From the sequence record NC_048821.1: DNA of 64,000 bases; one strand, written 5' to 3'. Below the pieces are notes generated by a model that had not been told where the DNA came from, made no database searches, and saw only the letters and a program-made list of their open reading frames with translations. Of this stretch, positions 1,331 to 46,095 are shown piece after piece. Positions within the stretch are counted from its first letter, which is position 1. Every line of letters starts with the position of its first letter. The position numbers and the translations under genes are program-made.

Positions 1331-1500
1331 TATCCTAATGGGGGAGGGGGCAAAGACTTGAAAACATCGAAGATAATTTAATTAATATATTAAGTTAAAT
1401 ATACCTTAGAGTATATACGACATTACGAAGTGATGGGAGTATATACGGTGAGTATTACGAAGTAATACGGATAAAGGTTATTTAACGTATACTGCATTAA
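1331..1500. other. structured intergenic element (G-tract, AT palindrome, two GAA-loop hairpins)
   Basis: GGGGAGGGGG 1341-1350; TTAATATATTAA 1382-1393; GAGTATATACG at 1409 and 1437; hairpins at 1421-1435 and 1452-1468. Confidence 0.6.
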
Positions 1501-1545
1501 AGACCGTTAGGTCACGATAACAATTGATAACAAAGAGAATACATT

Positions 1546-2385
1546 ATGACTAAGCTAACTTACACTCAGCGTTTCGCTACTCGTTTTGAAAAGAAAATCA
1601 TGTCTCAACAGCCTGAACTGTTAAAGCTATACCAGCGTATTTGTGGTCACGACTACTGGTATGATTTTTGTGACGCGTTACCGGGCTGGCGTGCAGGTCT
1701 AGAGAGTGAACGAGATATCATTCGACAGTTAGATGAAAATAAAGAACACAAATACTATCCTATCTTGCAATGCCTCTGGAGTAACAAAGGGGATAAGGAA
1801 TCGATCGATAGTGGGAACGTGTTCGAGGAGTGGTTAGAAAAATACCGAGATGAGTCCATGGATATGTATCGTTTCTTAGAGACACTAGATCGTCTTCAAA
1901 TGGATGATGAGAAAATTGCTAGAGCGGTTAGAGCAATGCGTCAAGTAAGTAAGTTCTTGATTGAAGAATCCGAGGTAGAATCTAAAGTCGTTGACTACTT
2001 CCCTAAGTTGGTTTACACGAAACACTTGGGTCCTAAGTCGATCGGTAAGTGTTACGTAGATAAAGTTCAACTTCCTAGAAAACTCCAGCGTTTCACAGAG
2101 GTGATGGTAACACGTGCCGAAATGTATGACTTTGATTGTTTAGGATTACTTACCCCTCATGTCGGTACGTTTGATACGGTCCGTTTTGATCCTGAGTCAG
2201 AGAACGAAGAACACTTGGCTTACATCAAGGGATATCACTTCAAGTCAGTATACATCCTTAAAGGCAAACTACTGGCTAAAATTCGTCGTATTGAACTGCG
2301 TGATCTGAAAGATCTAACCGAGGTGTTAAGAGGAAAGGGATCAGTTCAATCTCTTTACACTCCTAAAGACCTGGAGCGCGTATGA
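1546..2385 (+). CDS. hypothetical protein
   Basis: 279-aa ORF heading a run of overlapping (ATGA-type) co-oriented genes. Confidence 0.7.
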   Translation: MTKLTYTQRFATRFEKKIMSQQPELLKLYQRICGHDYWYDFCDALPGWRAGLESERDIIRQLDENKEHKYYPILQCLWSNKGDKESIDSGNVFEEWLEKYRDESMDMYRFLETLDRLQMDDEKIARAVRAMRQVSKFLIEESEVESKVVDYFPKLVYTKHLGPKSIGKCYVDKVQLPRKLQRFTEVMVTRAEMYDFDCLGLLTPHVGTFDTVRFDPESENEEHLAYIKGYHFKSVYILKGKLLAKIRRIELRDLKDLTEVLRGKGSVQSLYTPKDLERV

Positions 2386-2879
2386 GTGATCTAAGAAACC
2401 ATTACGTTCGAGATTGGCTAACCAACGATGAAGGAGCGCTATGTTGCGCCGAATTCTTTATTAGTGAGTCTTACAAAGGGAGGTTCATTAATGTAGGTTA
2501 CTCCATCAAAAACCGAAATGTCGCCTCCGTATTTTGTATGTTGGATGTTGACAACACACTGAATCAAGAACTCAACCGCCACATCCAACATGTCACCGAA
2601 CTCATTGGTGTACTAGATAAAGTTCATGAGTTCATCACCACTTCGAGTAGTGAAGGGAGTCGACAACGATCTTGGGCGGTCCCACATCGAGATATCCACG
2701 ATCAAGTGACTATTTCTATCCAACACCATTTTAAGAACTCTTTTAAAATGATCATACAAATAGGGACTTCTACCACGTATTTTTCTATGGAAGATGAAGA
2801 GATGGTGGATGTACTTTTAACATTGACAGACTTGGCGAAACAACATAACAAGGCATTGGGTAAATTGGTGGCGTCATGA
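2382..2879 (+). CDS. hypothetical protein (probable paralog of 2876..3382)
   Basis: 165 aa, ATGA overlap, similar length and sequence pattern to the next ORF. Confidence 0.65.
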   Translation: MSDLRNHYVRDWLTNDEGALCCAEFFISESYKGRFINVGYSIKNRNVASVFCMLDVDNTLNQELNRHIQHVTELIGVLDKVHEFITTSSSEGSRQRSWAVPHRDIHDQVTISIQHHFKNSFKMIIQIGTSTTYFSMEDEEMVDVLLTLTDLAKQHNKALGKLVAS

Positions 2880-3382
2880 AAAAGATCGGAAGAAGAGAGT
2901 TCTTGAGCGACAAAGGGTTGAGTATGGTCGCCTACAGTTGTTCGGTCAATGACAACAATTTGTTGAAGATGTATTTTACCATCTATCTAAATAAAACGGA
3001 CGTCACTTTACATCGTGAAGTGTCATTGAAAGAATACCCGCTTCGAGAACTCAACATCGAGTCGGCGTTCAACAAAATAGAGCGCCTCATCAAAACTTTA
3101 CAGGAGTACGTAAAACACTTACAAGACGGTGGAGTTGTAAATGATCACCGCCCGGTCGGGTTATTAGTTGAACCTGATACCGGAGACTACGTAGGAGAAA
3201 CCAGTACAGTTCATTTATGGGCTAATGGGGAACAGGTCGTTTTTAGCTTAACTAGTTGTGAAAAGAAACTAAGGACTACCTTGGATCGAGAACCTACGAT
3301 AGAACTACTGACAACACTCATCGGACACTTATGGTGTCACTTAAACGATGCGAAAACGATAACACAGAATGCACTAAAATAA
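2876..3382 (+). CDS. hypothetical protein (probable paralog of 2382..2879)
   Basis: 168 aa, ATGA overlap. Confidence 0.65.
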   Translation: MKKIGRREFLSDKGLSMVAYSCSVNDNNLLKMYFTIYLNKTDVTLHREVSLKEYPLRELNIESAFNKIERLIKTLQEYVKHLQDGGVVNDHRPVGLLVEPDTGDYVGETSTVHLWANGEQVVFSLTSCEKKLRTTLDREPTIELLTTLIGHLWCHLNDAKTITQNALK

Positions 3383-3396
3383 ACAAGGATTCCACC

Positions 3397-3801
3397 ATGA
3401 CTAAATATCGCACTCTCATAGACCATTACCGAGGCGTGTTAGGTTTAAGTCAAAAACTTAAACCTGTTGACATTAACCGCACCTCCCTCCACATCACCAA
3501 CTTGGGCATCAAAGACCAAGAGACGAAAGCGTTGTTTACCGTCGCTTATTTCCACCTCAAAATTCACACCCGTTTCGATGACAGAAAATCTCAAGTCACC
3601 GCATACACTTTATCCGAAGGCGTGCGATTATTGGGAGCGGGTTACGACAAAGAAACCGTCACAATGGAAATGATCGCTATGCCGAGTAAGTTCTACGACA
3701 ATGAAGAGATCATCGTCAACGTAGCGGATGTGGCATTAGACTACCTGGAACGCATGATAGGTTCTGTGGAAGAAGCATTAAAAGAGCGAGTCATGGCATG
3801 A
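3397..3801 (+). CDS. hypothetical protein
   Basis: ORF track 3331..3801; AAGGA before ATG 3397 favours the MTKYRTL start. Confidence 0.6.
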   Translation: MTKYRTLIDHYRGVLGLSQKLKPVDINRTSLHITNLGIKDQETKALFTVAYFHLKIHTRFDDRKSQVTAYTLSEGVRLLGAGYDKETVTMEMIAMPSKFYDNEEIIVNVADVALDYLERMIGSVEEALKERVMA

Positions 3802-4247
3802 AGATCTTGAATAAGACTTATCTGTACTTCGTTAGTTTGTTTTACAATATCTTCTATCGTATCAACCCAGAACAAGAAGTGTTTGTTGGTTATCTAACTC
3901 ACTATCTCTCTAGACTTGGTTTTGACAATGTCCACTTGTTTTTAAACAACGAACGAGTCCAGCGTCAAACCGAGTTTTTAAACTACCATAACTATAAACA
4001 GAATTACCAGGGAGCTGTGTTCATTGCTGGATGTTGTTATGCCGAGTTTAACCTCGGTTTTAAACACCATCATCAGTGCTTGGCATTTGGTCAAACGTTG
4101 TCGGACGTTTTTAAACATCGTCATCAATTTGAAGAAAAGCCAAGGAGCGTGGTGATTGCCGAATCCTTAGAGCGAATGGGGGTAACTGAAACCGTTGAAC
4201 TCTCAAGAGCACTCAATAAGGCTATCGACAAAATCTTAACTTACTGA
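3798..4247 (+). CDS. hypothetical protein
   Basis: 149 aa, ATGA overlap. Confidence 0.6.
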   Translation: MKILNKTYLYFVSLFYNIFYRINPEQEVFVGYLTHYLSRLGFDNVHLFLNNERVQRQTEFLNYHNYKQNYQGAVFIAGCCYAEFNLGFKHHHQCLAFGQTLSDVFKHRHQFEEKPRSVVIAESLERMGVTETVELSRALNKAIDKILTY

Positions 4248-4259
4248 ACAGGAACTATT

Positions 4260-4592
4260 ATGCTGAAGGAAATCATTCAAGCTTTCTCTGACAAAATGGA
4301 AGAGAACGGACCTATTGATCCGAACCAACACCAAGACGACACTATCCTTGTTTTAGGACTTCAGACCACATTACCGCACGAGTGCTTACACCCCAACGGC
4401 CATTTCCTTAACTTGATGGCTTGTGCGTTATCTGGACAACTGCTTGCTCTCAAAGCACTTACTAAGAGTGAAACCAATATCCTCAACGTTCTGCATTACA
4501 TCGACTACTTGCACGAGACAACGCTTTACGGATACGTGGATGTATCTGAGATAGAAGAGTTGAAAGATCAAATCATCTCGGTTACTTTTTAA
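4260..4592 (+). CDS. hypothetical protein
   Basis: 110 aa, AGGA RBS upstream. Confidence 0.6.
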   Translation: MLKEIIQAFSDKMEENGPIDPNQHQDDTILVLGLQTTLPHECLHPNGHFLNLMACALSGQLLALKALTKSETNILNVLHYIDYLHETTLYGYVDVSEIEELKDQIISVTF

Positions 4593-4602
4593 CATTTAAA
4601 AT

Positions 4603-4633
4603 AACTTACACCCATATTACTTGGGTGTAAGTT
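4603..4633 (+). terminator. 12-bp perfect hairpin overlapping an early-promoter-like motif
   Basis: AACTTACACCCA-TATTACT-TGGGTGTAAGTT. Confidence 0.55.
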
Positions 4634-4672
4634 CACTCTTAATATTTAATAAACCTTTATAGAGGAAACATC

Positions 4673-4861
4673 ATGAAAGACGTTAACCACCTACTAGCTG
4701 CGCTTGACATCAACCTTAACTTCAATCTACCTGAAACTAATGTCCAAGAGATCATGTGCAAAGTTTGTCCTAACCTAGCCTTACAGCTACTTAAGAAAAG
4801 AAATGAAATTCTTAAAGAGTCTCTGCAACTACACTGTATCTTTAGAGTTGGAAATGGTTGA
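4673..4861 (+). CDS. small hypothetical protein
   Basis: 62 aa, GAGGAAA RBS; stop overlaps ATG 4854 of the next gene. Confidence 0.55.
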   Translation: MKDVNHLLAALDINLNFNLPETNVQEIMCKVCPNLALQLLKKRNEILKESLQLHCIFRVGNG

Positions 4862-6536
4862 CGCACTTAACTTGTTGCAAAACAGTACCGGCTTCTTCAA
4901 TAGAAATTTCAACCACAACATCATCTCTGCACCACTTGCGTTTGGCGAGACTTACTACAACAAGTGTGTTCGTACTTTATCCACTTTAACCCAGGTACCA
5001 CCGCCGGTATCAGAAACCTTCATGCATTGGTTGGTGTTAGGTGAAACAGTTAACAAAACGTTGCCGAGCAACGTCTACTCTAATTTTGAGTATGCATGTT
5101 CATCCATTGGGTTAGGGGAAAGTTTCAAAGCTGTCTTCACTCCTGATGTTACTAATTCATCATTTGATGCGAAGAAAATTACAGCACTTGACCTCACTAA
5201 TTGTCTCAATCAAACGTCAGTGAGTCATGGTTCCGTGCAAGCTGCTCAATTAGCTGAATTTGGAATGAGAGTCACGAACTTAATAAGTGCCCCAATTCCA
5301 TTTGGGACTCGTGCTTTGGACTTAAGTGATCCAACACCGTTGTACGAATTGGTTCTAAAGCATCTAGGTAAATTAAGTGGAGTTAAGTACGAACCTAAGT
5401 TGATTAGTTTAACCAACTTATTGTTGCTTGGCGAAATACCTAAAGAACCTATCCTCCTAGAACCGAAAAATTACCAAAAGTTACTTTCTAATTTTGGTGC
5501 GCAGTATTCGAACATGGAGACTTACGCTTTAATCCAAACCTACGTAAGACCGGCTAGTACTTCTCCAAACATCGCTCAGCTATTAGGATGTGCGGGAACG
5601 TCAAATAGACCGTCGTTCTGTTTGCAAAGTATAGAACATGCTTTCAACACAGTTGCGGAGGAAAAGTTCTCTCGTAAGGAAGCAAGACTGTTGTCAAGAC
5701 TTTACTCCGACTTCCACACTCGTGAACCAGAGTACATCGTTACTCATTACGAATTGGAAGATTTCATGAAGCTAGACTGTTACATCCGTTCTCTGCTCCA
5801 AAAATACCACGGTACATTTGGTGGTGTGTTGAAAGGGGTGACTGCTTGGCACGAGATTCGTGGGAAGTTAAACGAAAAGGCTGATATGGAAATGAAAGAG
5901 AAAACCGATACACCTTTAGCTAAGTTGATGACCAAGTCTCGCTTACAAGCAGAGGCAGTCATCGCCGAAACAACACCTTTCTTATTTGAAGATCGTCAAC
6001 TTACTTCAGAAGAAATTAATGAAGTTCTTAGTCAAGCGGAACACGAGACTTATCTCCTAGCATTGTTAGCGTTAGAAAACCAAATCGACTTAGAAGGTGT
6101 TTTTGATAACCCTGATGAAATCACATCTCTAACCGTTAATAAAACTCAGTCATCGCAAACCTCCCTACCGGAACCGGAAATAACGGACACACCGCTTCAA
6201 ATCAAATTGGAAAAACCTTCCGATGAAGTAAAGGTTGTGAAGTATGTTTTGGACCGACTAAACGATAAACTCAAATATCAAGGGGGTGATCTGGATAATG
6301 TGCTCCAACAGTACTTCGCAACTCGTCCGGTCTCCATCGATACGGTTATTCGTTGTTTGGCCCTGCTTCCTAAATCCGTTGACACCTCAGGGTTAAGTGA
6401 GGAGATCAAAACCACTTACGAAGGACTGATCGCAGGTAAAGGTACAATGCAAATAGAAAGCTTCCCATCCCTGGGTCAATCTATTGCAGAAGCTATTTAC
6501 TTAGCGTTAAACCCTTTGGAATTTGCTGGATGGTAA
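4854..6536 (+). CDS. large hypothetical protein
   Basis: ORF track 4803..6536; ATG 4854 overlapping the upstream TGA is the likelier start; no motif recognised. Confidence 0.7.
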   Translation: MVDALNLLQNSTGFFNRNFNHNIISAPLAFGETYYNKCVRTLSTLTQVPPPVSETFMHWLVLGETVNKTLPSNVYSNFEYACSSIGLGESFKAVFTPDVTNSSFDAKKITALDLTNCLNQTSVSHGSVQAAQLAEFGMRVTNLISAPIPFGTRALDLSDPTPLYELVLKHLGKLSGVKYEPKLISLTNLLLLGEIPKEPILLEPKNYQKLLSNFGAQYSNMETYALIQTYVRPASTSPNIAQLLGCAGTSNRPSFCLQSIEHAFNTVAEEKFSRKEARLLSRLYSDFHTREPEYIVTHYELEDFMKLDCYIRSLLQKYHGTFGGVLKGVTAWHEIRGKLNEKADMEMKEKTDTPLAKLMTKSRLQAEAVIAETTPFLFEDRQLTSEEINEVLSQAEHETYLLALLALENQIDLEGVFDNPDEITSLTVNKTQSSQTSLPEPEITDTPLQIKLEKPSDEVKVVKYVLDRLNDKLKYQGGDLDNVLQQYFATRPVSIDTVIRCLALLPKSVDTSGLSEEIKTTYEGLIAGKGTMQIESFPSLGQSIAEAIYLALNPLEFAGW

Positions 6537-6885
6537 GATGTCTCTTGTAGATGAAATACAATCTCCCTTCTTTAGGGAGTTGTGTCAATACCTTAACCAA
6601 CTCACTTACACGTTGGATGATTTTGAAGATCCTTATCTTTATCAAAACCTCCAACAAGAATTAACGCGTGAACTCTTTCGTATATTGAAACCACACGTTA
6701 TATCTCGTCCAGACATTCGGGAGAAATACCGGCAAGCTGATTTAAGGGTACATCTCTTCCTAACGCCCCATGAGGTTCGCTACTGCGTAAAACCAGTAGT
6801 AGTTGACCTAGCGTGGGACTTAATGGAAGAAACCTTACCAGAGCCCGTAGAGAACCCGATGCCGTCGGACAAACTACCATTTTAA
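6523..6885 (+). CDS. hypothetical protein
   Basis: 120-aa ORF overlapping the end of the previous gene. Confidence 0.55.
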   Translation: MLDGKMSLVDEIQSPFFRELCQYLNQLTYTLDDFEDPYLYQNLQQELTRELFRILKPHVISRPDIREKYRQADLRVHLFLTPHEVRYCVKPVVVDLAWDLMEETLPEPVENPMPSDKLPF

Positions 6886-6898
6886 CATTTAACTAAAA

Positions 6899-6928
6899 AC
6901 ACTACCTGGTCGTAAGACTGGGTAGTGT
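6899..6928 (+). terminator. stem-loop with GUAA (GNRA) tetraloop
   Basis: ACACTACCTGGTC-GTAA-GACTGGGTAGTGT with two G-U pairs. Confidence 0.55.
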
Positions 6929-6946
6929 AATTATAAGGAGGGTAAT

Positions 6947-7252
6947 TTGAACGTACCTGCTGTCTTAGGTGCTATGTTTGGTACCGCTATTACTGGGGCT
7001 ACAACAGAAGACCTGAAAATGACTTTACTAGGTGCGGCTACGGGAGCAATCACCGTGGGTATATTGGACTCTACTCGTGATGAAGACAAACCTTCATTAG
7101 GGACTAGAGATTTTTGTACATCAGCATGTGCTTCTATTTGGCCTGTGCTGATCTACGAAAAACCTCAGGAATATATTCCTTACTACTTTGAAGAAGATGA
7201 ACAATTTACGGGTGACGATATCTTAGATATGCCATTAACATTTGATCATTAG
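6947..7252 (+). CDS. glycine-zipper membrane protein
   Basis: AAGGAGG RBS, TTG start; VLGAMFGTAITGA and LLGAATGAITVG GxxxG-type hydrophobic helices; acidic C-terminus. Confidence 0.6.
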   Translation: MNVPAVLGAMFGTAITGATTEDLKMTLLGAATGAITVGILDSTRDEDKPSLGTRDFCTSACASIWPVLIYEKPQEYIPYYFEEDEQFTGDDILDMPLTFDH

Positions 7253-7258
7253 CAATTA

Positions 7259-7292
7259 TAACTCCTACCTCCCATTTGGGAGGTAGGAGTTA
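7259..7292. terminator. bidirectional hairpin terminator (conserved family)
   Basis: TAACTCCTACCTCCC-ATTT-GGGAGGTAGGAGTTA, perfect 15-bp stem between convergent genes. Confidence 0.8.
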
Positions 7293-7313
7293 CTCACTCA
7301 TTTATTTTTTTTG

Positions 7314-8852
7314 TTATGCATCGAAATCGTCGAACTCATTACCGTCATCATCGAGTTGGACTTTAAACGAACGGCGACACTGGTTCTTACCATTTATGTC
7401 ATGAACTAAGCCTTTGGTCGGGTCGAGGTCATAAATGCCGAAGCGATCACTCATTGGAGAACCTTCACCACCTCGCGCTTTACCTAAGGACCATGTGAAG
7501 TACGCTCTATCTCCACCCGGTTTAGCAACGTGGAATGTGAACTCGTAATCTACTTCGTTGGTAATCTTCGTAGAAGTCTCGGTCATGGATTTGCCACCGA
7601 CTTCACGGGCGAAGTAAAGTTCAGATTCATCATCTGCTTCACGGAGATGTTTCTTTGCTTCTGGTGATAACTGGTGGGGAGTCACAAAAGCGATACCCCG
7701 GTTTACCATAAAGGCACGAGTCCGACGATATAAGTCTTGTAACTTATCGCCTTTAGTTTCACCCGTCATCCCCTTTAAGTCAGCCATCGCCAAATAGTCG
7801 TAAGCATAGAAAATGATCTCATGACCTTTCATCTCTAACTTACGGATACGGTCTGTGATGTTGTAGTAGTTATCTTCCGTTGGGTTAACACGGTTGATTT
7901 TCAACACCCAACCGTTCTCAGCAAAAGCGTCGATGATAACTTTAGCGATATCCGCAGCCGGTGTAGAAGTGAAGTCCCCAACTTCACCAGTCTTGTTTAC
8001 CATGATCAGTTTGTAGATACGTTCAATGATAACGTCCAACGCATCTTCTGCTGAATCCAATAATACGGTCGGTATACGACTTCGGTCACGCAACATCGGT
8101 TTGTTGTATAAACCAACAGACGCCACTACATGACCTAGACCAAATGACTTACCACGGTTAGTCAGGGCGTTAATCAAGTAGAACTTACCACGACGTAATC
8201 CACAGTCCGGATACAACGCACGGTTCATACCTTGCAAGCCTAATTTAAGTACACCCTCTGCGGAGGATTCTTCTTTGGCTCGTTCAATGATTTTAGTGAA
8301 AGAGTCTGGGTCATCAGTATCAACGGACTCCACCAGTGAAGGGTCTTTATCCCCTAACATCTTTTGAGTCAATTGATCTTCAATCATGTCGGCTAATGCT
8401 GCCCACTTCTCTTTGGTCATCTTAGATGGATCACCGAAGAAAGGTTCTTTGATTGCTTCTTTAAAATCCAGACCAAACTTTTCGTCTGCTCGTGCTTTAC
8501 GGATTTCTTTGATGTGCTGGTAGATGACCTGTCGGGTGCGTTCTTCTGATGGGTAATCTTCCAGACCGTATTCGATACTGGATTTTAATTCTGGAGCTTC
8601 TTTAGAGAAATCAAGCACACGCTGCATTAAGTTTGATTTTATGACCGGTTCGTCTTTTGGCTGGTCCAGAACCCACTTAATGGTGTCCCTGATTGAAACC
8701 TCTATCTTTTTGTCTTGGGTAAAAACGTCGCCCTTTGCTTCTGGTATGAGCGCCAAGGTATCGAGTAATTCTTGTGTCAAAGATTCGTCGGTCAGCTTAC
8801 TCGCTTGATAGAGAGACGTTAGTATCTTGACTAATTGTAACAGCGGACTCAT
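7314..8852 (-). CDS. DnaB-like (SF4) replicative helicase, phiKZ gp118-like
   Basis: Walker A variant ALTNRGKS, DYLAMAD Walker B-like, TPHQLS, KARGG; sits divergent from the capsid block as in phiKZ-like phages. Confidence 0.85.
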   Translation of the reverse strand: MSPLLQLVKILTSLYQASKLTDESLTQELLDTLALIPEAKGDVFTQDKKIEVSIRDTIKWVLDQPKDEPVIKSNLMQRVLDFSKEAPELKSSIEYGLEDYPSEERTRQVIYQHIKEIRKARADEKFGLDFKEAIKEPFFGDPSKMTKEKWAALADMIEDQLTQKMLGDKDPSLVESVDTDDPDSFTKIIERAKEESSAEGVLKLGLQGMNRALYPDCGLRRGKFYLINALTNRGKSFGLGHVVASVGLYNKPMLRDRSRIPTVLLDSAEDALDVIIERIYKLIMVNKTGEVGDFTSTPAADIAKVIIDAFAENGWVLKINRVNPTEDNYYNITDRIRKLEMKGHEIIFYAYDYLAMADLKGMTGETKGDKLQDLYRRTRAFMVNRGIAFVTPHQLSPEAKKHLREADDESELYFAREVGGKSMTETSTKITNEVDYEFTFHVAKPGGDRAYFTWSLGKARGGEGSPMSDRFGIYDLDPTKGLVHDINGKNQCRRSFKVQLDDDGNEFDDFDA

Positions 8853-8891
8853 AAATGCTCCAATTTAATGTATATCTTTAAAGGTTAAAGG

Positions 8892-9464
8892 TTGAATATG
8901 AAATTTGTGAATAGTGGTCTGTCCGCACCTAAAAAGGTTTGGGTGTTAACCGACCAACAGTTACTAAGTTTAGATGCAGCAGGTATAGGATTTGACCGTT
9001 TGTCAGAACTTCCTACTTTACTTGATAAGTTGCCTGAGCAAGATGTTATCGACATTGCATTAACTCAATACCGAGTCGGTTTGAAGTTTGGTGTGGACGT
9101 TGGAAACGTGTTCGAACAATTTAATGATGACTATAAAGATATCCTGCTCAGTAAAATTAAAACCGAACAGAAACGTCTTTCTAAGGTACAACATCTTACG
9201 GAATTGAAGAACTACAGTAAATTCTATGTACATAACACTAATGAATTATTGGTGTTGGTCATCACAGACGCTGAAGTGTCTATGAATTATATTAGTGGAC
9301 TATGTGCTTCGTTCACTGAGCTACATGTGCAGTCGTTTACCGAAAGCATGTTGAAAGCATTGTATCAAACTTACGGTTACACCTACCTTCATCATAAAGA
9401 GTGTTGCCGCAATTTGATAGATGGAGAGTTCAACTTGGCTAAGGTTTACCAAGCATTGGTCTAG
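8892..9464 (+). CDS. hypothetical protein between helicase and capsid gene
   Basis: 190 aa; occupies the phiKZ gp119 position (synteny only). Confidence 0.65.
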   Translation: MNMKFVNSGLSAPKKVWVLTDQQLLSLDAAGIGFDRLSELPTLLDKLPEQDVIDIALTQYRVGLKFGVDVGNVFEQFNDDYKDILLSKIKTEQKRLSKVQHLTELKNYSKFYVHNTNELLVLVITDAEVSMNYISGLCASFTELHVQSFTESMLKALYQTYGYTYLHHKECCRNLIDGEFNLAKVYQALV

Positions 9465-9563
9465 TGTGTTGTAACATTCTATGTGCAACAGAAAAGCACA
9501 AACAAATATTTGTTTATGTTTATCATTAAAATTAATACATTTTTTCGATAAAGGAAAAGAGTA

Positions 9564-11756
9564 ATGAAAAGAAATATCGTAGCTCAGCTGACCCCTAGTT
9601 CTGCTGGCGTTTACACAGCTATCAAAGCGGGTCTTAACCAAGGCGCTTTCCAGTCGTTTGCTGGTGTTGAATCTCTACAAACAGCGAGCGAGCAATTAGG
9701 CTTGGTTACTGGTAACGAATCATTCAGTGGTTCTGCGCGTGAAACACTTAAAGCCCTAACTGGTGAACAGCAATTCGCTGTAATCAACTCTGTGCAGCGT
9801 GCACTAGAGAAAAACTCTGTTGACGGCATGGAATCTCTACTAAGCGAAGAAAAGAAAGTCGCTGGTATGGAAGGTTTCTCTTGGGCTCAGTCTCCTGGTC
9901 ATTCTGTTGAAGGCAAAGCGGCTTCTATCACACTTAACGCTCTAGCTCACCGTCAAACTGACGCAGCTGAAGCGATGTTCAAGACGGTTTCTGTTCCTTA
10001 CGAATCAGAGCAACTTGAATACACAGTTCGTACTTCAGGTCTAGGTCGTTACATCTACGGTGCATCTGCATTTGATTCAGCGTCTCAACTACAACCTGTT
10101 ACAAGCCTACTGCGTCAGTCTAAATACTTCCTAGACGACACACTAGAGCTAACTCCGGTTTACCCAGCGGCATCTGATTCTCCAGTTCGCAAGCTATTCG
10201 TTGACGAAGCAGACTTCACTCCTTGGGAAAAGTCTTACTCTAACGCGGACGCACTACGTCGCTCAAACCACCTAACGTCTTTCATTAAGACTGGTAAAAC
10301 AATTACCAACCTACTAGGTATCGCTGAAGTACCTGGACAGACTCCTTTCGATAACTCAACTGACGAAATCGAAGCGAACTCTATCACTGTTCAGAAAGTT
10401 CTATTCAAAGTAACTATCGGTGGCACTGACCACGTTCTAGTACTTCCAACGAACAACTTCACAAACTCTTCTTTCGGTGTGACTTCTAACGGCCACAGCT
10501 CTGACGACCGTCTACTAAACATGGTTGTAAAAGCTCTACCTGTTACTGCGTTCCAAGCAAAAGACGGCACTGAAACAACAGCATTCGATCCAGTACAAGC
10601 TGGCGGCGCTAAAGCTTACTTCAGCTTTACACTTGGTGGTACTTACCAACGTCAAACTAACTCGATCACGACTAACGCGTCTGATCTAAACCTTGACTAC
10701 ATCGAACTAGATGACGTTAAGCACAACCAGGCTACTAAGTCTACTACTGTGAAAGCGCTATTCAGCAAGTTCGAAAACGGTCAAGTGATCGGTTGGTTGC
10801 CTTCGTACAACCACAACAACGTTAACCGTACTAACTTCGGTTACCGTGTTGAAGTGTTCGACGCACACAAAGTGATGAACGTTCGTCGCGAAACTCCTAT
10901 CTCTGTGAAATACCCAGTTGATAAGAACGACGTGAACGAAGAGTCTCTAAGCTTCGCTATCGAAGAGATGAACACAATCCTACAAGCGCAAACTACAGCT
11001 AAAGCTTACCAAGCTGCTGAAGGTCACATTGCACGCGTAGCATCTCTAAACGGTCACGCGATCGTAGGTAACGAACAGTCTGCTTCTGTAATGGCTGGTA
11101 TGCACTTCGTTAACGCTTCTTACCTAAACCGTAAGATGAAGCTAGCGGACGCTGTATCTGCTCTTGACTCTACTACAGTTCTAGAAGCTGTAGAGAAAAC
11201 GCTAACTATGAACATCACTGAGCTATGTGCAGCACTAAGCACAGTGTCTGGTCTAGCGGCGATTTCTGAGTACCGTCGTATCGACAAGAAGTGGGTAATC
11301 GTTGGTCACCAAAACCTAGCACGCTACATGATCCGTCAAGGTGATGCACGTACTATCGGTGCTGGTATCTCGTTCCAAGCGATCGAGTCTAACCTAGACG
11401 ACATGATCGGTAAGTTCTACATCTTCCCAGAATCTGACACTAACGGCGAAAACATCGACGTTATCGGTGGCATGGGTGTGATGGTTTCTAAAGAACACCA
11501 AGTGATCCAAGCGAACCTAACTCGTAACAACGCGGACTTCGGTATCGTAATCACTCAACCAGCATACAAACACCACTCTGTATGTCCTATCATCGGTGTA
11601 CTAGAAATCGAAGATGCGAAACACGCAATCGACGAAGAAGGTCTAATCCGTTACCTAAACGCTCAGCGCGTAAAAGTAACTAACGCCGACGAGTTCCCTG
11701 AAGCTGGTGGTGCTGCTGGTGCATCAGCTGACGCTGACGCTGGTAAACTACCATAG
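9564..11756 (+). CDS. major capsid protein, phiKZ gp120 / EL gp78-like
   Basis: 730 aa; TxAAEAMFKTVSVP and RRETPISVKYPV segments typical of the phiKZ-family capsid; strongly biased codon use; N-terminal G-x-E sites; strong terminator downstream. Confidence 0.85.
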   Translation: MKRNIVAQLTPSSAGVYTAIKAGLNQGAFQSFAGVESLQTASEQLGLVTGNESFSGSARETLKALTGEQQFAVINSVQRALEKNSVDGMESLLSEEKKVAGMEGFSWAQSPGHSVEGKAASITLNALAHRQTDAAEAMFKTVSVPYESEQLEYTVRTSGLGRYIYGASAFDSASQLQPVTSLLRQSKYFLDDTLELTPVYPAASDSPVRKLFVDEADFTPWEKSYSNADALRRSNHLTSFIKTGKTITNLLGIAEVPGQTPFDNSTDEIEANSITVQKVLFKVTIGGTDHVLVLPTNNFTNSSFGVTSNGHSSDDRLLNMVVKALPVTAFQAKDGTETTAFDPVQAGGAKAYFSFTLGGTYQRQTNSITTNASDLNLDYIELDDVKHNQATKSTTVKALFSKFENGQVIGWLPSYNHNNVNRTNFGYRVEVFDAHKVMNVRRETPISVKYPVDKNDVNEESLSFAIEEMNTILQAQTTAKAYQAAEGHIARVASLNGHAIVGNEQSASVMAGMHFVNASYLNRKMKLADAVSALDSTTVLEAVEKTLTMNITELCAALSTVSGLAAISEYRRIDKKWVIVGHQNLARYMIRQGDARTIGAGISFQAIESNLDDMIGKFYIFPESDTNGENIDVIGGMGVMVSKEHQVIQANLTRNNADFGIVITQPAYKHHSVCPIIGVLEIEDAKHAIDEEGLIRYLNAQRVKVTNADEFPEAGGAAGASADADAGKLP

Positions 11757-34133: not shown

Positions 34134-34134
34134 T

Positions 34135-36690: not shown

Positions 36691-36697
36691 TAAGTGT

Positions 36698-36734: not shown

Positions 36735-36740
36735 TTTAGT

Positions 36741-37793: not shown

Positions 37794-37838
37794 ACATGGT
37801 GTCCTATAGATAAGTAGGGTAAATTAATTGAGTCAATT

Positions 37839-40316: not shown

Positions 40317-40340
40317 ATTTAAATCTATATTATCTGGGTG
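40315..40340 (+). promoter_or_regulatory. early promoter candidate
   Basis: AAATTTAAATCTATATTATCTGGGTGT upstream of the nucleotidase-ligase operon. Confidence 0.55.
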
Positions 40341-40405
40341 TCCTTAGTGATTCGTAACAACTAATGCACTTTTATAGACACTCAGTTTTTAAAGGAAGTT
40401 TAATC

Positions 40406-40681
40406 ATGTCGAACACGAGAGAACCAGTGTGTCTGACCGGCACATACGACGCTAATGGCGTCATCCATTGTGATCCTAACGGTAATGAAAATATCCGTGT
40501 GGAGTTCACTAAAACACATAACCATTTGCAAGCATCGGTGTACGTTAACGAAATCAACCAAGGATTCGTAACCTTTGGGCTGAGTAACGAACGTGCCATC
40601 AGTACCTTTGCTCAAGGTGGATGTTGGAACGAGAACCAAGTGGCAGAATCGATCCACAACATCATCTCGGTTATACACTAA
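40406..40681 (+). CDS. hypothetical protein
   Basis: AAGGAAG RBS before ATG 40406 (ORF track 40364..40681). Confidence 0.55.
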   Translation: MSNTREPVCLTGTYDANGVIHCDPNGNENIRVEFTKTHNHLQASVYVNEINQGFVTFGLSNERAISTFAQGGCWNENQVAESIHNIISVIH

Positions 40682-40744
40682 TTAAGTAACGGTCTGTGGG
40701 GTGGTTGTCCATCTCACAGATCTGCTTTATTTAAGAGAAAGTCC

Positions 40745-41194
40745 ATGAATAATAAAGAAGTAATAGGGAACACCATCCCTTTATTAGACACTGAAGGGTT
40801 TTTCTCCGACGAAGGCTATCGACTTAAATCTAAGCTTTCTTTACGTTATGAACCTTACGAAGCAGTATTGGTAATCGGTAATGAATTTGAATTTGCTTTA
40901 GATGGTTGTATATTTAACCAAGGACTTATTCAAATCACCCGAGAAACGAACTGGGATGAGACCCTCCCTGAATCTCCGGTCGATTACGCCATCGATGAAA
41001 TGTTAACCACGATACAAAAACCCTGTGTGGAAATAGAGGACTTGGACCCTAGTTACCGAGAAAAGTTCAATGAGATGAGTAAAGAATTACTCGAGGCTTT
41101 TAGGGCGCAGGGTGAACAAGGCGGCAACTCATGGTTACGTGGAGATCTTTACCGTTTCAACAATGACATACAACATTTAAAACAAACCAACTAG
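40745..41194 (+). CDS. hypothetical protein
   Basis: 149 aa, co-oriented. Confidence 0.6.
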   Translation: MNNKEVIGNTIPLLDTEGFFSDEGYRLKSKLSLRYEPYEAVLVIGNEFEFALDGCIFNQGLIQITRETNWDETLPESPVDYAIDEMLTTIQKPCVEIEDLDPSYREKFNEMSKELLEAFRAQGEQGGNSWLRGDLYRFNNDIQHLKQTN

Positions 41195-41205
41195 GAACAT
41201 CACCA

Positions 41206-41850
41206 ATGCATAAACACATCACTTTTGATATGGATGACACACTCACAGCAACACATGCTTATATTCGAGAGAACTTAAAGCCGACGACTGAAGCCAACCT
41301 CCAAGCGATGATTGAATGTGATCGTGCCGGACATGCTTACATCAATGCATCCAGCGAGTTACAAGATGACATTCATGACCAGATCCTAACGAGTCAAGAG
41401 TTCATGTTAAAGTCTGGCGTGGCAGAGTGGGTCGCTAACCACTATGAAGAATTTTGTGCATTGATTATGTCCTTAAAGGCTCAAGGGCACACGTTCAGTA
41501 TTTGTACACACCGTGGCTGGTCAGAACAAGGTAAACCTTTAACCTCAGAATGGTTGAATGCTAAAGCGCTAGATCTGTTTGAGGAGATTCATTGTTTGGA
41601 CTCTAAAGAGCATCCTTGCAAGCTAACTTATTTAGAAGACCTATATGGGCGTGACTTTATCATAGTGGATGATAACCCGTATCATGGTATCGACCGCTCC
41701 AAGGAATTGAGTTACAACCAGAACGTCATTCAGTGTATTGGGGAACATACTGTTCCGGAGTACGTCCACTTCCGTACCTTTGCTAGTTTCCCTGAGTTCA
41801 AAGAACATTTATTAACCTTATTGTTAGGAGTCAAGCATGAGTCTATTTAA
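41206..41850 (+). CDS. HAD-superfamily phosphatase, 5'(3')-deoxyribonucleotidase-like
   Basis: motif I ITFDMDDTL, motif II ICTHRG, lysine in HPCKL, motif IV IIVDDNP. Confidence 0.75.
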   Translation: MHKHITFDMDDTLTATHAYIRENLKPTTEANLQAMIECDRAGHAYINASSELQDDIHDQILTSQEFMLKSGVAEWVANHYEEFCALIMSLKAQGHTFSICTHRGWSEQGKPLTSEWLNAKALDLFEEIHCLDSKEHPCKLTYLEDLYGRDFIIVDDNPYHGIDRSKELSYNQNVIQCIGEHTVPEYVHFRTFASFPEFKEHLLTLLLGVKHESI

Positions 41851-43801
41851 AACTAGACTGGAAACCCTAGTAAAACAAATCCGCTACCATGCTGGTGTGT
41901 ATTACCGGGAAGACCGCAGTGAGATCAGTGATGCTGATTACGACCTCTTGGTCCAGGAATACAACCAGATCATAAACGAACACCCCGAGTTACTCACCAC
42001 AGACACGGATGTGTTTAAAGGTAAAGCGGTTCCCATAGACACAACCGGGGCAGAATTCCAGAAAGTGAATCATGATCCCGCAATGTTGTCACTGGACAAC
42101 GTCTTTACGCCAGAAGCCTACGAGGAATGGAAGGCTAAACTCCCAGAACAAGACCAGAGCGACATTGCTTTGGAATGGAAGTTTGATGGTATCGCTTTAC
42201 GTCTGATTTACGAAGATGGTAAATTACAACAACTACTGACTCGTGGGACTGGATTGATTGGTGAGGACGTGACGGAGAACGTCGATCATTATACTAATAT
42301 CCCTGAAGAACTGCCTGAAGACTTCACTGCTGGTAAGAAAATTATCATTGACGGGGAAGGGGTGATAGACACCAAGCTATTTGAGGAATTGAATGACTTG
42401 GTCCCTACTCCTTATGTCACTCCGCGTCATGCCGCTTCAGGAATCACCCGTAACCGAAGTATGAAGGAATTGGTTAAAGGTTCCTTAACGTTCATTGCAC
42501 ACTCTTTTCCACGTGCTATTAAGAGTGGTTATAATGACACTATGATGGCGTTACGTAAGCTAGGATTCAGTACTAGTCAGGACTATCGCGTGGATGGTAT
42601 TACTGTAGATCGTCCCACACATATTCCTTTTGCGGTTGATGGGATAGTCGCTAAGGTGCGTGACCATGAGCGACGTAAGGCGTTGGGAGAAACCAACCAC
42701 CATCCCCGTTGGGCTACGGCTTACAAATTCCCTACGTTATTTGAATCCCCTAAGTTGGAAGATGTGATTTGGGAAACTGGTCGTACGGGAACCATCACTC
42801 CGGTGGCTACGTTTTCCCCTGTCATGATAGCTGGTGTAACCGTGCGACGAGCGACACTACATAACTTCCGTACGTTCCAACGAGAATCAGAAGGACTTCG
42901 TGTAGGTTCGGTGATTAAGGTTGGTATGGCAGGTGATATCATCCCTCAGTTCTTTGAAGTAGAAAAAGTAGGAAAGGGTCGTCAATGTAAGCCACCCAAG
43001 AACTGTCCTGCTTGTGAAGAACCGTTGCGTTACGAAGGTGCGGATCAAGAACAAATCTTCTTGACTTGTACCAACCACGCAAAGTGTCCAGCACAGACCC
43101 TAGGTCGCTTGTACAACTTCGGTAGCACCCATGCGATGAACATCCGTGGATTAGGTCCAGCTTCCATTAGTCGCTTCAATCAACTGGGTTTGTTAAATAA
43201 CTTTGTGGACTTCTTCCATCTCCGTGATTTAACTCAAAACACCCCGTTGTCTAAGAATGAATTAAAACTCTTAGATGAGATTGACAAGTGTCGTAAGACC
43301 AGCTTTGCCCGATTCATTACCGCTTTAGGTATCAACGGTGTCGGTAAAGGAACCGCTCGCGACTTGGCGTCACACATTAAGTCTAAGGAAGACTTCATCT
43401 CGTTCTTGGAAGATACCGAGGGATTAATGGAAATCCCCGATATTGGTTGGGGTATCGCCATGAATGTCTCGAGTTACATTAAGGAGAATCGTACTACTAT
43501 TGAAACCCTATTAGAACTGATGGAGTTTGAAGTTACGGAAGTACCGGACTCCTTAATACCAATCGTGGTGACGGGTAAGTTCCCTATCCGTCGTAAAGCA
43601 ATCGAAGAAGGGCTTTTGGCTCACGGTTATGATGTTGGTGATCGTGTGACTTCCAAGACCAAAGCAGTGGTCTTAGGTGACTTCCCTACTAAACATAAAG
43701 AGGTCACCGCAAACGAACTGGGGATCCCTGTGTTGAACATTAGCGTTCATCCGGAACTTACGGTCAGTGATATCTTAAAAGAGCTACAAGGGCGTTTATA
43801 G
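41837..43801 (+). CDS. ligA: NAD-dependent DNA ligase
   Basis: YY..D...ISDADYD domain Ia, EWKFDG, TRG.G..GEDVT, DGIVAKV, WATAYKFP, TGTITPVA, CPAC..C..C zinc finger, HhH repeats, C-terminal BRCT-like segment. Confidence 0.95.
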   Translation: MSLFKTRLETLVKQIRYHAGVYYREDRSEISDADYDLLVQEYNQIINEHPELLTTDTDVFKGKAVPIDTTGAEFQKVNHDPAMLSLDNVFTPEAYEEWKAKLPEQDQSDIALEWKFDGIALRLIYEDGKLQQLLTRGTGLIGEDVTENVDHYTNIPEELPEDFTAGKKIIIDGEGVIDTKLFEELNDLVPTPYVTPRHAASGITRNRSMKELVKGSLTFIAHSFPRAIKSGYNDTMMALRKLGFSTSQDYRVDGITVDRPTHIPFAVDGIVAKVRDHERRKALGETNHHPRWATAYKFPTLFESPKLEDVIWETGRTGTITPVATFSPVMIAGVTVRRATLHNFRTFQRESEGLRVGSVIKVGMAGDIIPQFFEVEKVGKGRQCKPPKNCPACEEPLRYEGADQEQIFLTCTNHAKCPAQTLGRLYNFGSTHAMNIRGLGPASISRFNQLGLLNNFVDFFHLRDLTQNTPLSKNELKLLDEIDKCRKTSFARFITALGINGVGKGTARDLASHIKSKEDFISFLEDTEGLMEIPDIGWGIAMNVSSYIKENRTTIETLLELMEFEVTEVPDSLIPIVVTGKFPIRRKAIEEGLLAHGYDVGDRVTSKTKAVVLGDFPTKHKEVTANELGIPVLNISVHPELTVSDILKELQGRL

Positions 43802-43831
43802 CGCCCTCCTTACCATCAAGAGGAAAACATA

Positions 43832-44140
43832 ATGGAACAAATTTACTTAGTGACTGTTCACATTGGTGAATTAACTGGGAAGGAGATCGAGGATAAGTTA
43901 AAAGCTTTTCCTAAATCCCGTATCCACTCCGTTGAAAAGTATCAGGTGACTTATTACACTAAGTTGAATAATGAAAATGTCATACTGTCTGAGTTGGAAG
44001 ATGTGACGTCTATTTCAACAAGTGGCACTGACATGATGAAACTAAGTGACCACCATTTTGTTGTTTGTCTAAAACCAAACGGTGACATCAATTTTAATAA
44101 GAAAGATCATCAACTTGCTGGTCATCTTTTTAACAATTAA
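43832..44140 (+). CDS. hypothetical protein
   Basis: 102 aa, GAGGAAA RBS. Confidence 0.6.
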   Translation: MEQIYLVTVHIGELTGKEIEDKLKAFPKSRIHSVEKYQVTYYTKLNNENVILSELEDVTSISTSGTDMMKLSDHHFVVCLKPNGDINFNKKDHQLAGHLFNN

Positions 44141-44171
44141 TCCCTCCATCTAAAGAAAAAGGAACCCCATA

Positions 44172-45410
44172 ATGGCTAACACTAAGAAAGCTGTAAAAGT
44201 AGAAACTCCTGAAGTTCCAGCGGCGGCAGAAGCTCCGGTAGTAAAAGAAGAAACAAAAATGCACATCAGTGCCCTTAAAGGTGGTGTTGTGGATAAGAAG
44301 GGTAACGTCATCATGATTGACGAATCCGGCCCTTCAAAGAAATTATCCGACCTACTAATGAGTCGTGGCTCATACCGTTACAGCGACTTAAAACGCAAGT
44401 TAAATGGTACCTCACAAAGTCGTGGGTTCTTTGACCATGACTTACCTGAACCTAAGTTAGAAGAGGTTGATTTTTATCCGATTGAAATGGGTGACGGTCT
44501 TACCATCTGGATGGACAAATCTTCTAGTGTGAAATTTGAGATCGAACGTCATCGTCCGGCATTTCTAAGAGCCAATGAAGACCCTAAAGATACCAGACCG
44601 TGTACCTTGATCGTATACAACTCAGAGGTAGAATTAGATATTGTTTCTTATTCTGACATGTTTGATAACGGCACTTCCCTCCTATTTTCAGTTGAAGGTA
44701 AAGTGGATCATATCCGAAACTCCGTCCTAGTCGGACCTGACTCCCGTCGCGGAGCGGTGGAACTAAATGCGATTCTGGATTCTGAAGTTTACTTTAACGG
44801 GTTTAAGTTCGAAGCACATCGTGTCACCAAGTCTAACGTTGAAAACTCCTACGTTCGACTATCTGGTAGCATCGAAGATTCCTTTATCACGGATTCTCAT
44901 ATCAGTTCTGAGAAATACTCTCATATTTCCAACTCAACAATCAAAAATAGTCACCTGGTTTGTAAATCAATAAGAGTCGGACGCCTTACACCATCAGACG
45001 GTGGTTACTACATCCCACGATTACATATCACGGACTTCCATTTCTACCAGTCCGATGAAGGCATTGAGATCTTCCGTGGATTCGAATTTGACACCATCGG
45101 TTCTGGTTATATGTACAACACTCTGGCGTTTGTTCCTCTGGACCGCGTTAGTGATAAAGTTGAGTTCTTGTTGTTCGCACCTAAGAAAGAAGGTGAAGAC
45201 TACGCCACACCAACTACCCGTGTGACGTGGGATATGAATAAACAAGAACTTCGTAAACACGTCAGTGCGTTGTTGTTCCCTAAACAAAGCACTGAAGACG
45301 TTCTGGGTACCATCGGTACTATTGAAGGTTCGGTAATCAACGAAGCAGTATCGGTCCTATACAACCGCCTACGCATCATTAAACAAGTTCGCACAGCTTC
45401 TATGCTGTAA
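44172..45410 (+). CDS. hypothetical protein with beta-solenoid-like I-x-(N/D)-S repeats
   Basis: IRNSVL, ILDSEV, VTKSNVENSYV, IEDSFITDSHI, ISNSTIKNSHL. Confidence 0.6.
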   Translation: MANTKKAVKVETPEVPAAAEAPVVKEETKMHISALKGGVVDKKGNVIMIDESGPSKKLSDLLMSRGSYRYSDLKRKLNGTSQSRGFFDHDLPEPKLEEVDFYPIEMGDGLTIWMDKSSSVKFEIERHRPAFLRANEDPKDTRPCTLIVYNSEVELDIVSYSDMFDNGTSLLFSVEGKVDHIRNSVLVGPDSRRGAVELNAILDSEVYFNGFKFEAHRVTKSNVENSYVRLSGSIEDSFITDSHISSEKYSHISNSTIKNSHLVCKSIRVGRLTPSDGGYYIPRLHITDFHFYQSDEGIEIFRGFEFDTIGSGYMYNTLAFVPLDRVSDKVEFLLFAPKKEGEDYATPTTRVTWDMNKQELRKHVSALLFPKQSTEDVLGTIGTIEGSVINEAVSVLYNRLRIIKQVRTASML

Positions 45411-45467
45411 GTCGTAATTAGTCCTCAGAGAGCCTTACCGGGCCTCTGAGGGTTATTAGGAGTCCCT

Positions 45468-45950
45468 ATGGATAATTTACCAACTACTGAAGTTCCCATC
45501 ACCATCAATGGGGTGGAAGAAACCGTAACGGTCACCATTAGCAATAAACCTTTATTGGTCCCTATGGCGGTTAATGCAGTAATGAATGATGACCCGTTCA
45601 TCAAATTAGCAATAAACGAGTGGGTAGCTAGCTTTCCTGAAGATGGTGTTATTTACACCTATGTGAGCGATGACGAGCTGATTACGATTGAGTTCCAACC
45701 AGAGTGTCACCTGGACATAGAAGTCACTCCTGGACAGCATGTGGCGTTCTGGACATTCAACAGTTCTTGGCAAGGCCGATTGCGTGTCGAAGGTGTGTGC
45801 GGTATGTTCAACTCCCATATCCCGGCGGCAGGTGTTGTAATGAAAGATTCGTTCTTGTTTAACCAGTACGCACTTAGTCCCGGTATTACGTTGTACAACA
45901 CCACACTCATTAAGTTAGAAGGTAACACTCGTAACGTACATATTACTTAA
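45468..45950 (+). CDS. hypothetical protein
   Basis: 160 aa, AGGAG RBS; ends in VVMKDSFL..ITLYNTTL, similar to the repeat pattern of the previous gene. Confidence 0.55.
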   Translation: MDNLPTTEVPITINGVEETVTVTISNKPLLVPMAVNAVMNDDPFIKLAINEWVASFPEDGVIYTYVSDDELITIEFQPECHLDIEVTPGQHVAFWTFNSSWQGRLRVEGVCGMFNSHIPAAGVVMKDSFLFNQYALSPGITLYNTTLIKLEGNTRNVHIT

Positions 45951-45955
45951 AAGGC

Positions 45956-45984
45956 ATCCCTCTTCCTTTATCGGGAAGAGGGAT
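45956..45984 (+). terminator. hairpin terminator
   Basis: ATCCCTCTTCC-TTTATCG-GGAAGAGGGAT followed by an A/T-rich run. Confidence 0.7.
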
Positions 45985-46005
45985 TATTAATTATTTTTTA
46001 ACTAC

Positions 46006-46095
46006 TATCCCCATCTTTTTGGGGAGGGGGAGAAAGAAAAAAGAAAAAACGTTGTCTATTTATTATTTTTAATATATTTATATACTTAATATAAC
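46006..46095. other. second copy of the G-tract/AT-rich intergenic element
   Basis: TATCC..GGGGAGGGGG 46021-46030, A-tract, TAATATATT 46070-46078, ATATACTTA. Confidence 0.55.

Follow-up and report, generated by a model that had tools for sequence, protein, structure and literature searches.

A conserved intergenic element with twin G-runs in Photobacterium phage PDCC-1 and related Gorgonvirinae phages

We analysed a window of 64,000 nucleotides (NC_048821.1, bases 62,001-126,000) from the genome of Photobacterium phage PDCC-1 (237,509 bp, 43% G+C), which belongs to Aphroditevirus, Gorgonvirinae, Chimalliviridae, that is, to the nucleus-forming jumbo phages. Two intergenic sites of this window, here called site 1 and site 2, and a third one located outside of it (site 3) carry a real, previously undescribed and conserved functional cis-element, which comprises a T-run box, two G-runs and a very AT-rich block. 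The element most likely marks special sites of transcription start, or possibly of DNA replication start. Our favoured reading, to which we assign a probability of about 0.4, is that it constitutes a specialised control module with the format of a promoter.

The + strand of PDCC-1 holds 181 of its 211 called genes, and intergenic DNA amounts to about 5.7% of the genome. A first-pass annotation of the window had noticed that two gaps (1309-1545 and 45951-46160) share a G-rich tract followed by an AT palindrome, and all of the sequence features that it listed are found there. It had described these gaps as the two largest, which is true of the annotated gaps of the window, although genome-wide they rank about 10th and 14th. 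The third member of the family escaped that annotation.

Results

The twin G-run is rare in the genome and conserved in two genera

The sequences were compared among eight distinct genomes from two genera, Aphroditevirus and Tidunavirus: PDCC-1 and the Vibrio phages 2 TSL-2019, USC-1, Aphrodite1, phiKT1019, pTD1, VP4B and phiKT1028; an additional record, 5 TSL-2019, is approximately the same phage as USC-1. With both strands of PDCC-1 counted, GGGGAGGGGG occurs exactly twice, in both cases in intergenic DNA and on the same strand, which is the coding one, while the count expected from a first-order Markov model is 0.126 (P = 0.007 for two or more). An nhmmer profile of positions -40 to +15 around the G-run (55 nt), built from 15 copies in 8 phages, recovers only these two sites in PDCC-1, with E-values of 4e-13 and 6e-13, and the next match has E = 2.

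Both sites occupy orthologous positions in every relative. Site 1 precedes the homologue of gp059, and site 2 has a terminator on one side and, on the other, the AraC-type gene that comes before the RNase HI gene. In VP4B and phiKT1028, the blastn matches at site 1 cover the gap alone and not the flanking genes. Between PDCC-1 and pTD1, the median identity of 100-nt windows is 73%, while it reaches 95% at site 1 and 94% at site 3, and these two sites are the sole long, wholly intergenic blocks in the top ~1% of conservation between both phages.

Since a BLAST comparison of the two gaps with each other is not significant, the likeness of sites 1 and 2 is modular, with boxes held at fixed spacing, and does not correspond to a long repeat. 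That same result, together with the ease with which short AT-rich words recur in AT-rich spacers, is what a chance resemblance between two AT-rich gaps, each with a G-run, would have in its favour. Against chance stand the two intergenic occurrences of a word expected about 0.13 times and the profile matches of E ~1e-13 at two places only, and this explanation is, in our view, refuted by the conservation of both loci, with identical geometry, in 8 phages of 2 genera and by the high identity of site 1 with pTD1.

The conserved trait is the presence of two or more G-runs, whose exact word varies (G5AG5, G4AG5, G4TAG4 and, at some copies of site 3, a four-run motif). Run lengths vary between 4 and 5 (G5AG5, G5AG4, G4AG5), with nearby compensating indels that preserve the spacing, and site 2 of phiKT1028 carries GGGGTAGGGG. 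In all cases, the G-runs are on the non-template strand. phiKT1028 also has a 20-mer of the AT block in common between its sites 1 and 2. A Shine-Dalgarno or anti-Shine-Dalgarno mimic, suggested by the GGAGG within G5AG5, was rejected in view of the G-run of phiKT1028 site 2.

No description of the element was found in Rfam or in the searched literature. With Rfam 15, the window gave no match at gathering scores, and up to E = 1 only a chance microRNA match appeared at sites 1 and 3. The earlier proposal of a dispersed, undescribed cis-element is upheld. Three IMG/VR scans and one metagenome scan for further relatives suitable for footprinting returned only known isolates or chance AT-rich matches, and from the DNA run examined nothing but contigs of a relative was obtained. 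Four chimalliviruses of greater distance lack a comparable G-run on the coding strand, and hence the element may be confined to Gorgonvirinae. Such a run is absent from Erwinia phage RisingSun, and Aeromonas phage PS1 has one, inside a gene only. Klebsiella phage Miami (86,924-86,935) and Shewanella phage FishSpeaker (158,025-158,033) each have one intergenic homopolymer, of 12 and 9 nt, respectively, located just past a stop codon and formed by C on the coding strand, a polarity opposite to that of the Gorgonvirinae G-runs.

The G-run occupies the position of a promoter core

Counting positions from the central A of the G-run, a T-run closed by (T/A)ACT is found at -26 or -25 in 15 of 15 copies, and the WAC of this T-run/WAC box ends 18 nt 5' of the G-run. 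An AAG or AAAG after the G-run is conserved and corresponds to the AAAGA of the first-pass annotation, while the TATCC that it reported before the G-run is present in PDCC-1 but not conserved in the relatives. RGATAA follows at +22 to +27 in all copies except those of Aphroditevirus site 2, where an all-purine tract of 29 nt stands instead, and ATATAC is found at +52 to +57 in all copies of site 1 and in Aphroditevirus site 2. When site 2 of Aphroditevirus is compared with that of Tidunavirus, only the box, the T-rich stretch, the G-run and the AAG survive, and these four parts are the minimal module.

We defined in PDCC-1 a set of class I promoters with the consensus tttTTTCAa.TCTATATtACcTaaGTG; its 21 sites genome-wide precede genes by ~40-95 nt. 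Their core is AT-rich and about 10 nt long, CTATAT(A/T)AC (CTATATAAC), with CTAAGTG downstream. The set matches the known early promoters of such phages, which are served by the virion polymerase (PMC7598289, PMC8244752). A matrix built from 19 sites identifies the 21 sites of the genome, 20 of them with scores of at least 25 and the weakest with 17.1; its best scores within the three gaps of the module range from 0 to -10, so no part of sites 1-3 is recognised.

PDCC-1 has 67 T-run/WAC boxes; class I cores or G-runs come after them at a single recurrent offset, +18, shared by four class I cores and two G-runs. The 44 boxes of pTD1 have two class I cores and two G-runs at this same offset. Because the +18 offset is common to class I cores and G-runs, the G-run can be said to occupy the position of the promoter core. 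With the promoter matrix, the four boxed class I promoters obtain the four highest scores. The G-run and the class I cores also share a T-rich stretch just upstream and a conserved AAG/AAAG 12-16 nt after their start.

A sigma-70 promoter was considered for site 1 and rejected, as its TTGAAA is not conserved (GTTAAA in USC-1 and Aphrodite1) and the AT-hexamers have spacings of 8, 15 and 19 nt. Neither did a leader peptide or small open reading frame after the G-run hold, since the ATG/TTG frames of site 1, of 7-13 codons, are frame-shifted by indels among the relatives and none exists at site 2.

The AT-rich block leads into a structured RNA at site 1

The first-pass annotation had interpreted the AT palindrome as an unwinding element. 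The block that contains it is indeed very AT-rich, with A/T at 29 of 30 bases at all three sites (top 0.008% of genome windows), and at site 2 it is the most AT-rich 40-nt window of the entire genome. It also contains, however, a promoter-like core and, at site 1, runs into a covarying structured RNA; the succession of the AT palindrome and ATATAC is therefore read as a promoter-like core together with the first part of a leader or small RNA that is structured. The resemblance of the site 1 core to class I is weak (position weight matrix score of -10).

When the three helices of site 1 are counted together, 97.7% of the cells are paired and 5 pairs have compensatory changes. The covariation score was reached by none of 500 shuffles, the minimum free energy has a z-score of -2.9, and sliding the helix partners lowers the pairing to 16-47%. 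The conservation of G-U pairs indicates that it is the + strand RNA that folds. In VP4B, the AT block and the ATATAC core are duplicated and helix 1 is absent, while helix 2 is retained, shows compensatory changes and has gained an inner stem by insertion. The conserved block of sites 1 and 3 ends with TATACTGC followed by T-rich sequence, which may be a 3' end signal.

Site 3 is a conserved non-coding region of ~450 nt (genome 223,708-224,160) that adjoins an HNH endonuclease gene. It holds, in this order, a T-run/CAC box 20 nt 5' of GGGGAGAAAGAGGGG, more G-runs and three to five repeats of GTCAAG(G)T at an irregular spacing of 11-20 nt. After these come a small hairpin, AGATAATTAAT, the AT palindrome and then TAGAGTAT, and the structured element, of ~130 nt, ends in a hairpin, TATACTGC and a T-run. 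The region is probably a small RNA gene. Its fold is similar to that of site 1, with little variation available for covariation. The site 3 copy of VP4B has an exact G5AG5, and the canonical four-run quadruplex motif is present only at site 3 of Aphrodite1 and phiKT1028. Among the neighbouring genes of site 3, no HTH (helix-turn-helix) gene and no initiator-like family were seen. The three sites form one family because AGATAATT(T)AAT and TAGAGTAT are intergenic only at sites 1 and 3, linking these two, and ATATAC(C)TTA is intergenic only at sites 1 and 2.

The sites combine physical extremes of the genome

In intergenic DNA, the three highest G4Hunter peaks are those of the G-rich tracts of sites 1-3. 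In terms of the predicted stability of RNA:DNA over DNA:DNA, ranked with the nearest-neighbour values of Sugimoto 1995 and SantaLucia 1998, these tracts occupy ranks 2 (the G-run of site 1), 4 and 9 among ~475,000 windows of 15 nt, and with 30-nt windows site 3 is in rank 1 and site 2 in rank 6. The all-purine tract of site 2 is the longest purine or pyrimidine tract of the genome, the runner-up having 19 nt. A canonical intramolecular G-quadruplex (four runs of three or more G, separated by loops of 1-7 nt) is absent from sites 1 and 2, which have two runs each. We also considered, and rejected, a hairpin in which, at site 2, the pyrimidines that precede the G-run would pair with the purines that follow it, and which is perfect in phiKT1019, weak in PDCC-1 and absent from site 1.

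A comparison with GC skew had been suggested as a check for a replication origin. The third-position GC skew of + strand genes has no significant turning point (permutation p = 0.31), and the cumulative GC skew tracks gene orientation. We do not trust the AT3 minimum near site 3, since it coincides with a block of giant genes. No iterons were found at sites 1 and 2, the repeats being confined to site 3. DnaA boxes (TTATCCACA-like 9-mers) were discarded, as TTATCC at site 1 and TATCCCC at site 2 are replaced by other bases in the relatives. A genome terminus or pac site at site 2 was likewise rejected: the 5 TSL-2019 record opens inside site 2, but the first and last 25 nt of this record overlap in an (AT)n run, and for this reason we consider this start an assembly break at low-complexity DNA. 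The ends of the PDCC-1 record (genome 17-70 and 237,456-237,509) have 54 identical bases in common, which is redundancy of a circular assembly rather than a demonstrated terminal repeat.

Features and genomic context of sites 1 and 2

The coordinates of the features are compiled in Table 1. In PDCC-1, site 1 has no hairpin terminator of its own; the XRE-type gp057 is encoded upstream of it, and helicase and polymerase genes lie 6-12 kb away. Site 2 directly precedes the AraC-type gene, as the first-pass annotation stated, in a neighbourhood with ligase, RNase HI and RNA ligase genes. The product of this gene, gp100, matches HTH_18 with E 1e-4, which is below the gathering score, and PHROG 7620 (transcriptional regulator) with E 2e-16. 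In pTD1 and VP4B, site 2 has an intact class I core at +67 from the G-run. The translation-initiation context TTAACCTTTACTAAGGA at 46139-46155 recurs upstream of several genes and is also found at genome 32,703-32,864 and 172,091-172,234.

Table 1. Features of sites 1 and 2, genes that follow them and class I promoters of the window (window positions)
Site	Feature	Position	Strand	Remarks
1	T-run/WACT box ATATTTTCTTACT	1310..1322	+	WAC ends 18 nt before the G-run; same box 18 nt before class I cores
1	Twin G-run G5AG5, GGGGGAGGGGG	1340..1350	+	Kept in all relatives; 10-mer of the first-pass annotation at 1341-1350
1	AT block opening with AGATAATTTAAT	1371..1404	+	Includes the TAATATATT palindrome at 1383-1391; invariant in relatives
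1	Promoter-like core ATATACCTTAG	1399..1409	+	ATATACCTTA at 1399-1408; +52..+57 from the G-run
1	Structured element	1411..1468	+	Helix 1 at 1411-1446 (C-GAA-G triloop hairpin inside), helix 2 at 1452-1468; covariation
1	Second T-run/AAC-like box and GTATACTGC	1478..1495	+	Common to the end of the site 3 element
1	Hairpin 3, GACC-GTTA-GGTC	1502..1513	+	gp059 leader; two middle pairs swapped jointly in phiKT1019 and pTD1
1	gp059, 279 aa	1546..2385	+	Next gene after site 1; without Pfam family; function unknown (PHROG 27923)
2	Terminator hairpin of the upstream unit	45956..45984	+	11-bp stem; compensatory changes among relatives
2	T-run/WAC box ATTATTTTTTAAC	45990..46002	+	Ends 18 nt before the G-run
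2	Twin G-run G4AG5, GGGGAGGGGG, and all-purine tract	46021..46049	+	G-run at 46021-46030 starts the 29-nt tract; kept in 7 relatives
2	AT block	46052..46097	+	TAATATATT at 46070-46078 and ATATACTTA at 46080-46088; A/T at 38/40 bases
2	Hairpin at leader start	46083..46110	+	Read from the alignment; 11-bp perfect in USC-1; segment deleted in Aphrodite1
2	Decayed class I-type core AATCTATACACCAGC	46118..46132	+	Aligns with an intact class I core in phiKT1019
2	gp100, AraC-type HTH protein	46161..47129	+	First gene downstream of site 2; Pfam and PHROG matches
2	RNase HI gene	47154-47678		After gp100; RNase_H E 2e-43
	Class I core starts inside the window	4612, 11852, 15844, 40325, 50369, 59868

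Other conserved regions

Three more regions were seen in the comparison with pTD1. Window positions 8761-8961, where both phages are 100% identical over 100 nt (against the genome median of 73%), cover the start of a DnaB-like helicase gene on the - strand as well as the divergent gap, of 39 nt, that precedes gp070. In the second region (window 9451-9601), which is the major head protein gene's leader, the identity is 96%; it has an AT-rich inverted repeat, lacks a class I promoter and may serve for late control. The third region (genome 187,491-187,831) is 99% identical, spans a 145-nt gap between divergent gene blocks and holds a 20-nt palindrome.

Discussion

The first-pass annotation had offered four functions for the element, and among them a special promoter class is the best fit, with the G-run placed 18 nt after a T-run/WAC box like the cores of four early-type promoters; no support was found for a tethering site for the phage nucleus. 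According to our favoured reading, a T-run ending in WAC(T), an 18-nt spacer and two G4-5 runs on the non-template strand would form a bipartite promoter-like DNA module, in the frame in which the strongest early-type promoters hold the AT-rich CTATATAAC core. It would be a rare, specialised site of transcription initiation or RNA-polymerase loading, whose core would be recognised as a G-rich duplex, probably with the aid of a dedicated phage DNA-binding factor, and it would act at a different time, or with a different polymerase form, than the 21 ordinary early promoters. The module would fire or gate rightward transcription into the very AT-rich block, where a second, weaker promoter-like core, ATATAC(C)TTA, is found; at site 1, and probably at site 3, transcription would then enter a leader or small RNA, with structure, that precedes the operon downstream. 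The analysis demonstrates the module itself, its geometry and conservation, the frame shared with promoters and the fold of the RNA; the start of transcription at the module, the polymerase used and any factor are points that we infer.

We favour this promoter-format module because of its coincidence with the promoter frame, its polarity, its position after the ends of transcription units and the decay of the ordinary promoter at Aphroditevirus site 2. Each module stands where one transcription unit has ended and the following gene has not yet begun, and is always co-oriented with the genes. In Aphroditevirus, gp100 still needs a promoter, since its ordinary class I core has decayed and a strong terminator stands upstream.

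Several observations weigh against a promoter. A G-rich core is the opposite of every described chimallivirus promoter, all of which are AT-rich (PMC7598289), and melts with difficulty; a promoter class would be expected to have more than the two or three copies seen per genome; and the variable make-up of the G-rich part, as in site 3 and phiKT1028, better fits a structure-forming element than sequence-specific recognition. This reading also leaves unexplained the most AT-rich DNA of the genome just downstream. The +18 coincidence rests on fewer independent cases than its count suggests, because three of the four boxed class I promoters are paralogous terminator-promoter cassettes, and three RNA-seq runs labelled with the host species contained zero phage reads.

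The early promoters of phiKZ have a T-rich motif upstream of -19, and its middle promoters have a TACT centred at -22 (PMC8244752). Like the phiKZ-like early promoters, the module is intergenic, co-oriented with genes and T-rich upstream, and, as in the strongest class I promoters of PDCC-1, a T-run/WAC box ends 18 nt before the core position; unlike the early promoters, it has a twin G-run as core, only 2-3 copies, a further conserved AT block of 50 nt and a second core. As regards the middle promoters, a (T/A)ACT is located 22-26 nt upstream of the G-run, and, were the phiKZ rule valid here, the 5' ends of transcripts would fall within or at the G-run. The TACT is preceded here by a T-run and in phiKZ by an A-rich repeat, however, and no G-run has been described for phiKZ.

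The main rival of this reading, and a serious one although somewhat less probable, is that the three modules are transcription-primed replication origins. A transcript from the T-run/WACT box, or from read-through, would persist across the twin G-run, held by the C-rich template in an R-loop or in a hybrid G-quadruplex of DNA and RNA, the AT block next to it would open, and RNase H would trim the RNA to a primer for the phage DNA polymerase, in place of the missing primase. Such a mechanism would account for the combination of genome extremes at the sites (G4Hunter, hybrid stability, AT content, longest purine tract), for the G-runs being always on the non-template strand, and for the tolerance of differing arrangements as long as two or more runs are kept. 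No primase is present in chimalliviruses, for which priming by R-loops has been proposed (PMC13648698). A related system is that of oriF and oriG of T4, in which a promoter and an AT-rich unwinding element take up ~100 bp and the phage RNase H does the processing; T4 has several origins of this kind (PMC3016281). A phage RNase H gene is at hand here as well, although the T4 origins have no G-run and use the host RNA polymerase with MotA. In the mitochondrial element CSB II (conserved sequence block II), G-runs arrest transcription by means of a DNA:RNA hybrid quadruplex and give rise to the primer for replication (PMC3488243, PMC4176368); as in the module, a single A interrupts the G-runs, which are on the non-template strand, and in CSB II they follow a promoter, but they are longer (G6AG8) and are transcribed by a single-subunit polymerase, compared with runs of G4-5 and multisubunit polymerases here. 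The repeats beside the AT-rich block of site 3 resemble the iterons of plasmid and phage origins and would favour this alternative, as would the replication-related genes in the neighbourhood of sites 1 and 2; the spacing of these repeats is irregular, however, they are restricted to site 3, and no recognisable initiator gene is adjacent or otherwise evident. The origin is further disfavoured by the absence of a significant turning point in the third-position skew, by the terminator hairpin just upstream of the G-run at site 2, by the lack of a comparable coding-strand G-run in the four more distant chimalliviruses, and by the plainer role of the AT block as a promoter and start of a structured RNA.

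We consider it improbable that the box and the G-run are the two half-sites of an operator for one regulator, such as the multi-HTH AraC-type gp100 or the XRE-type gp057, that represses or activates adjacent ATATAC-type promoters. The element's bipartite organisation, fixed spacing and two or three copies per genome are usual for operators, an HTH gene adjoins two of the sites, the constant 52-57 nt from the G-run to the ATATAC core (about five helical turns) would suit an upstream activator, and the short direct repeats added at site 3 are typical of protein binding. AraC and XRE proteins, however, normally read AT-rich or mixed sites and not G-runs, the HTH genes are placed differently among the three sites, with none seen at site 3, the G-rich part changes its make-up while the G-runs are kept, and a plain operator has no need of a strict strand polarity. 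Less probable still is a transcription stop or insulator, in which the twin G-run after a U-rich stretch would halt read-through by means of a co-transcriptional hybrid quadruplex, in the manner of CSB II but with no replication role, and would shield the specialised promoter and RNA downstream. The location of both modules at the ends of transcription units, the lack of a terminator at site 1 of PDCC-1, the polarity and the minimal requirement of two G-runs (PMC4176368) fit a stop, and the T-run box could serve as the U-tract. Nevertheless, a good hairpin terminator is already present upstream at site 2, dozens of other unit ends in the genome manage without a G-run, and the exact 18-nt spacing, the conserved RGATAA and the AT block at a fixed distance would be left unexplained.

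In nucleus-forming jumbo phages, how middle and other non-early transcription is specified is an open question, with no usable consensus, as are the site and mode of replication start in those without a primase; a recent review of chimalliviruses makes no mention of an origin. Whichever reading holds, the module provides a precise target of ~150 bp at three coordinates (63.3, 108.0 and 223.9 kb) of a 237-kb genome. The work has also yielded a definition of the early promoters of Gorgonvirinae and of two structured RNAs that are conserved. If the modules were origins, they would be the first cis-acting origin defined in Chimalliviridae and would explain replication without a primase.

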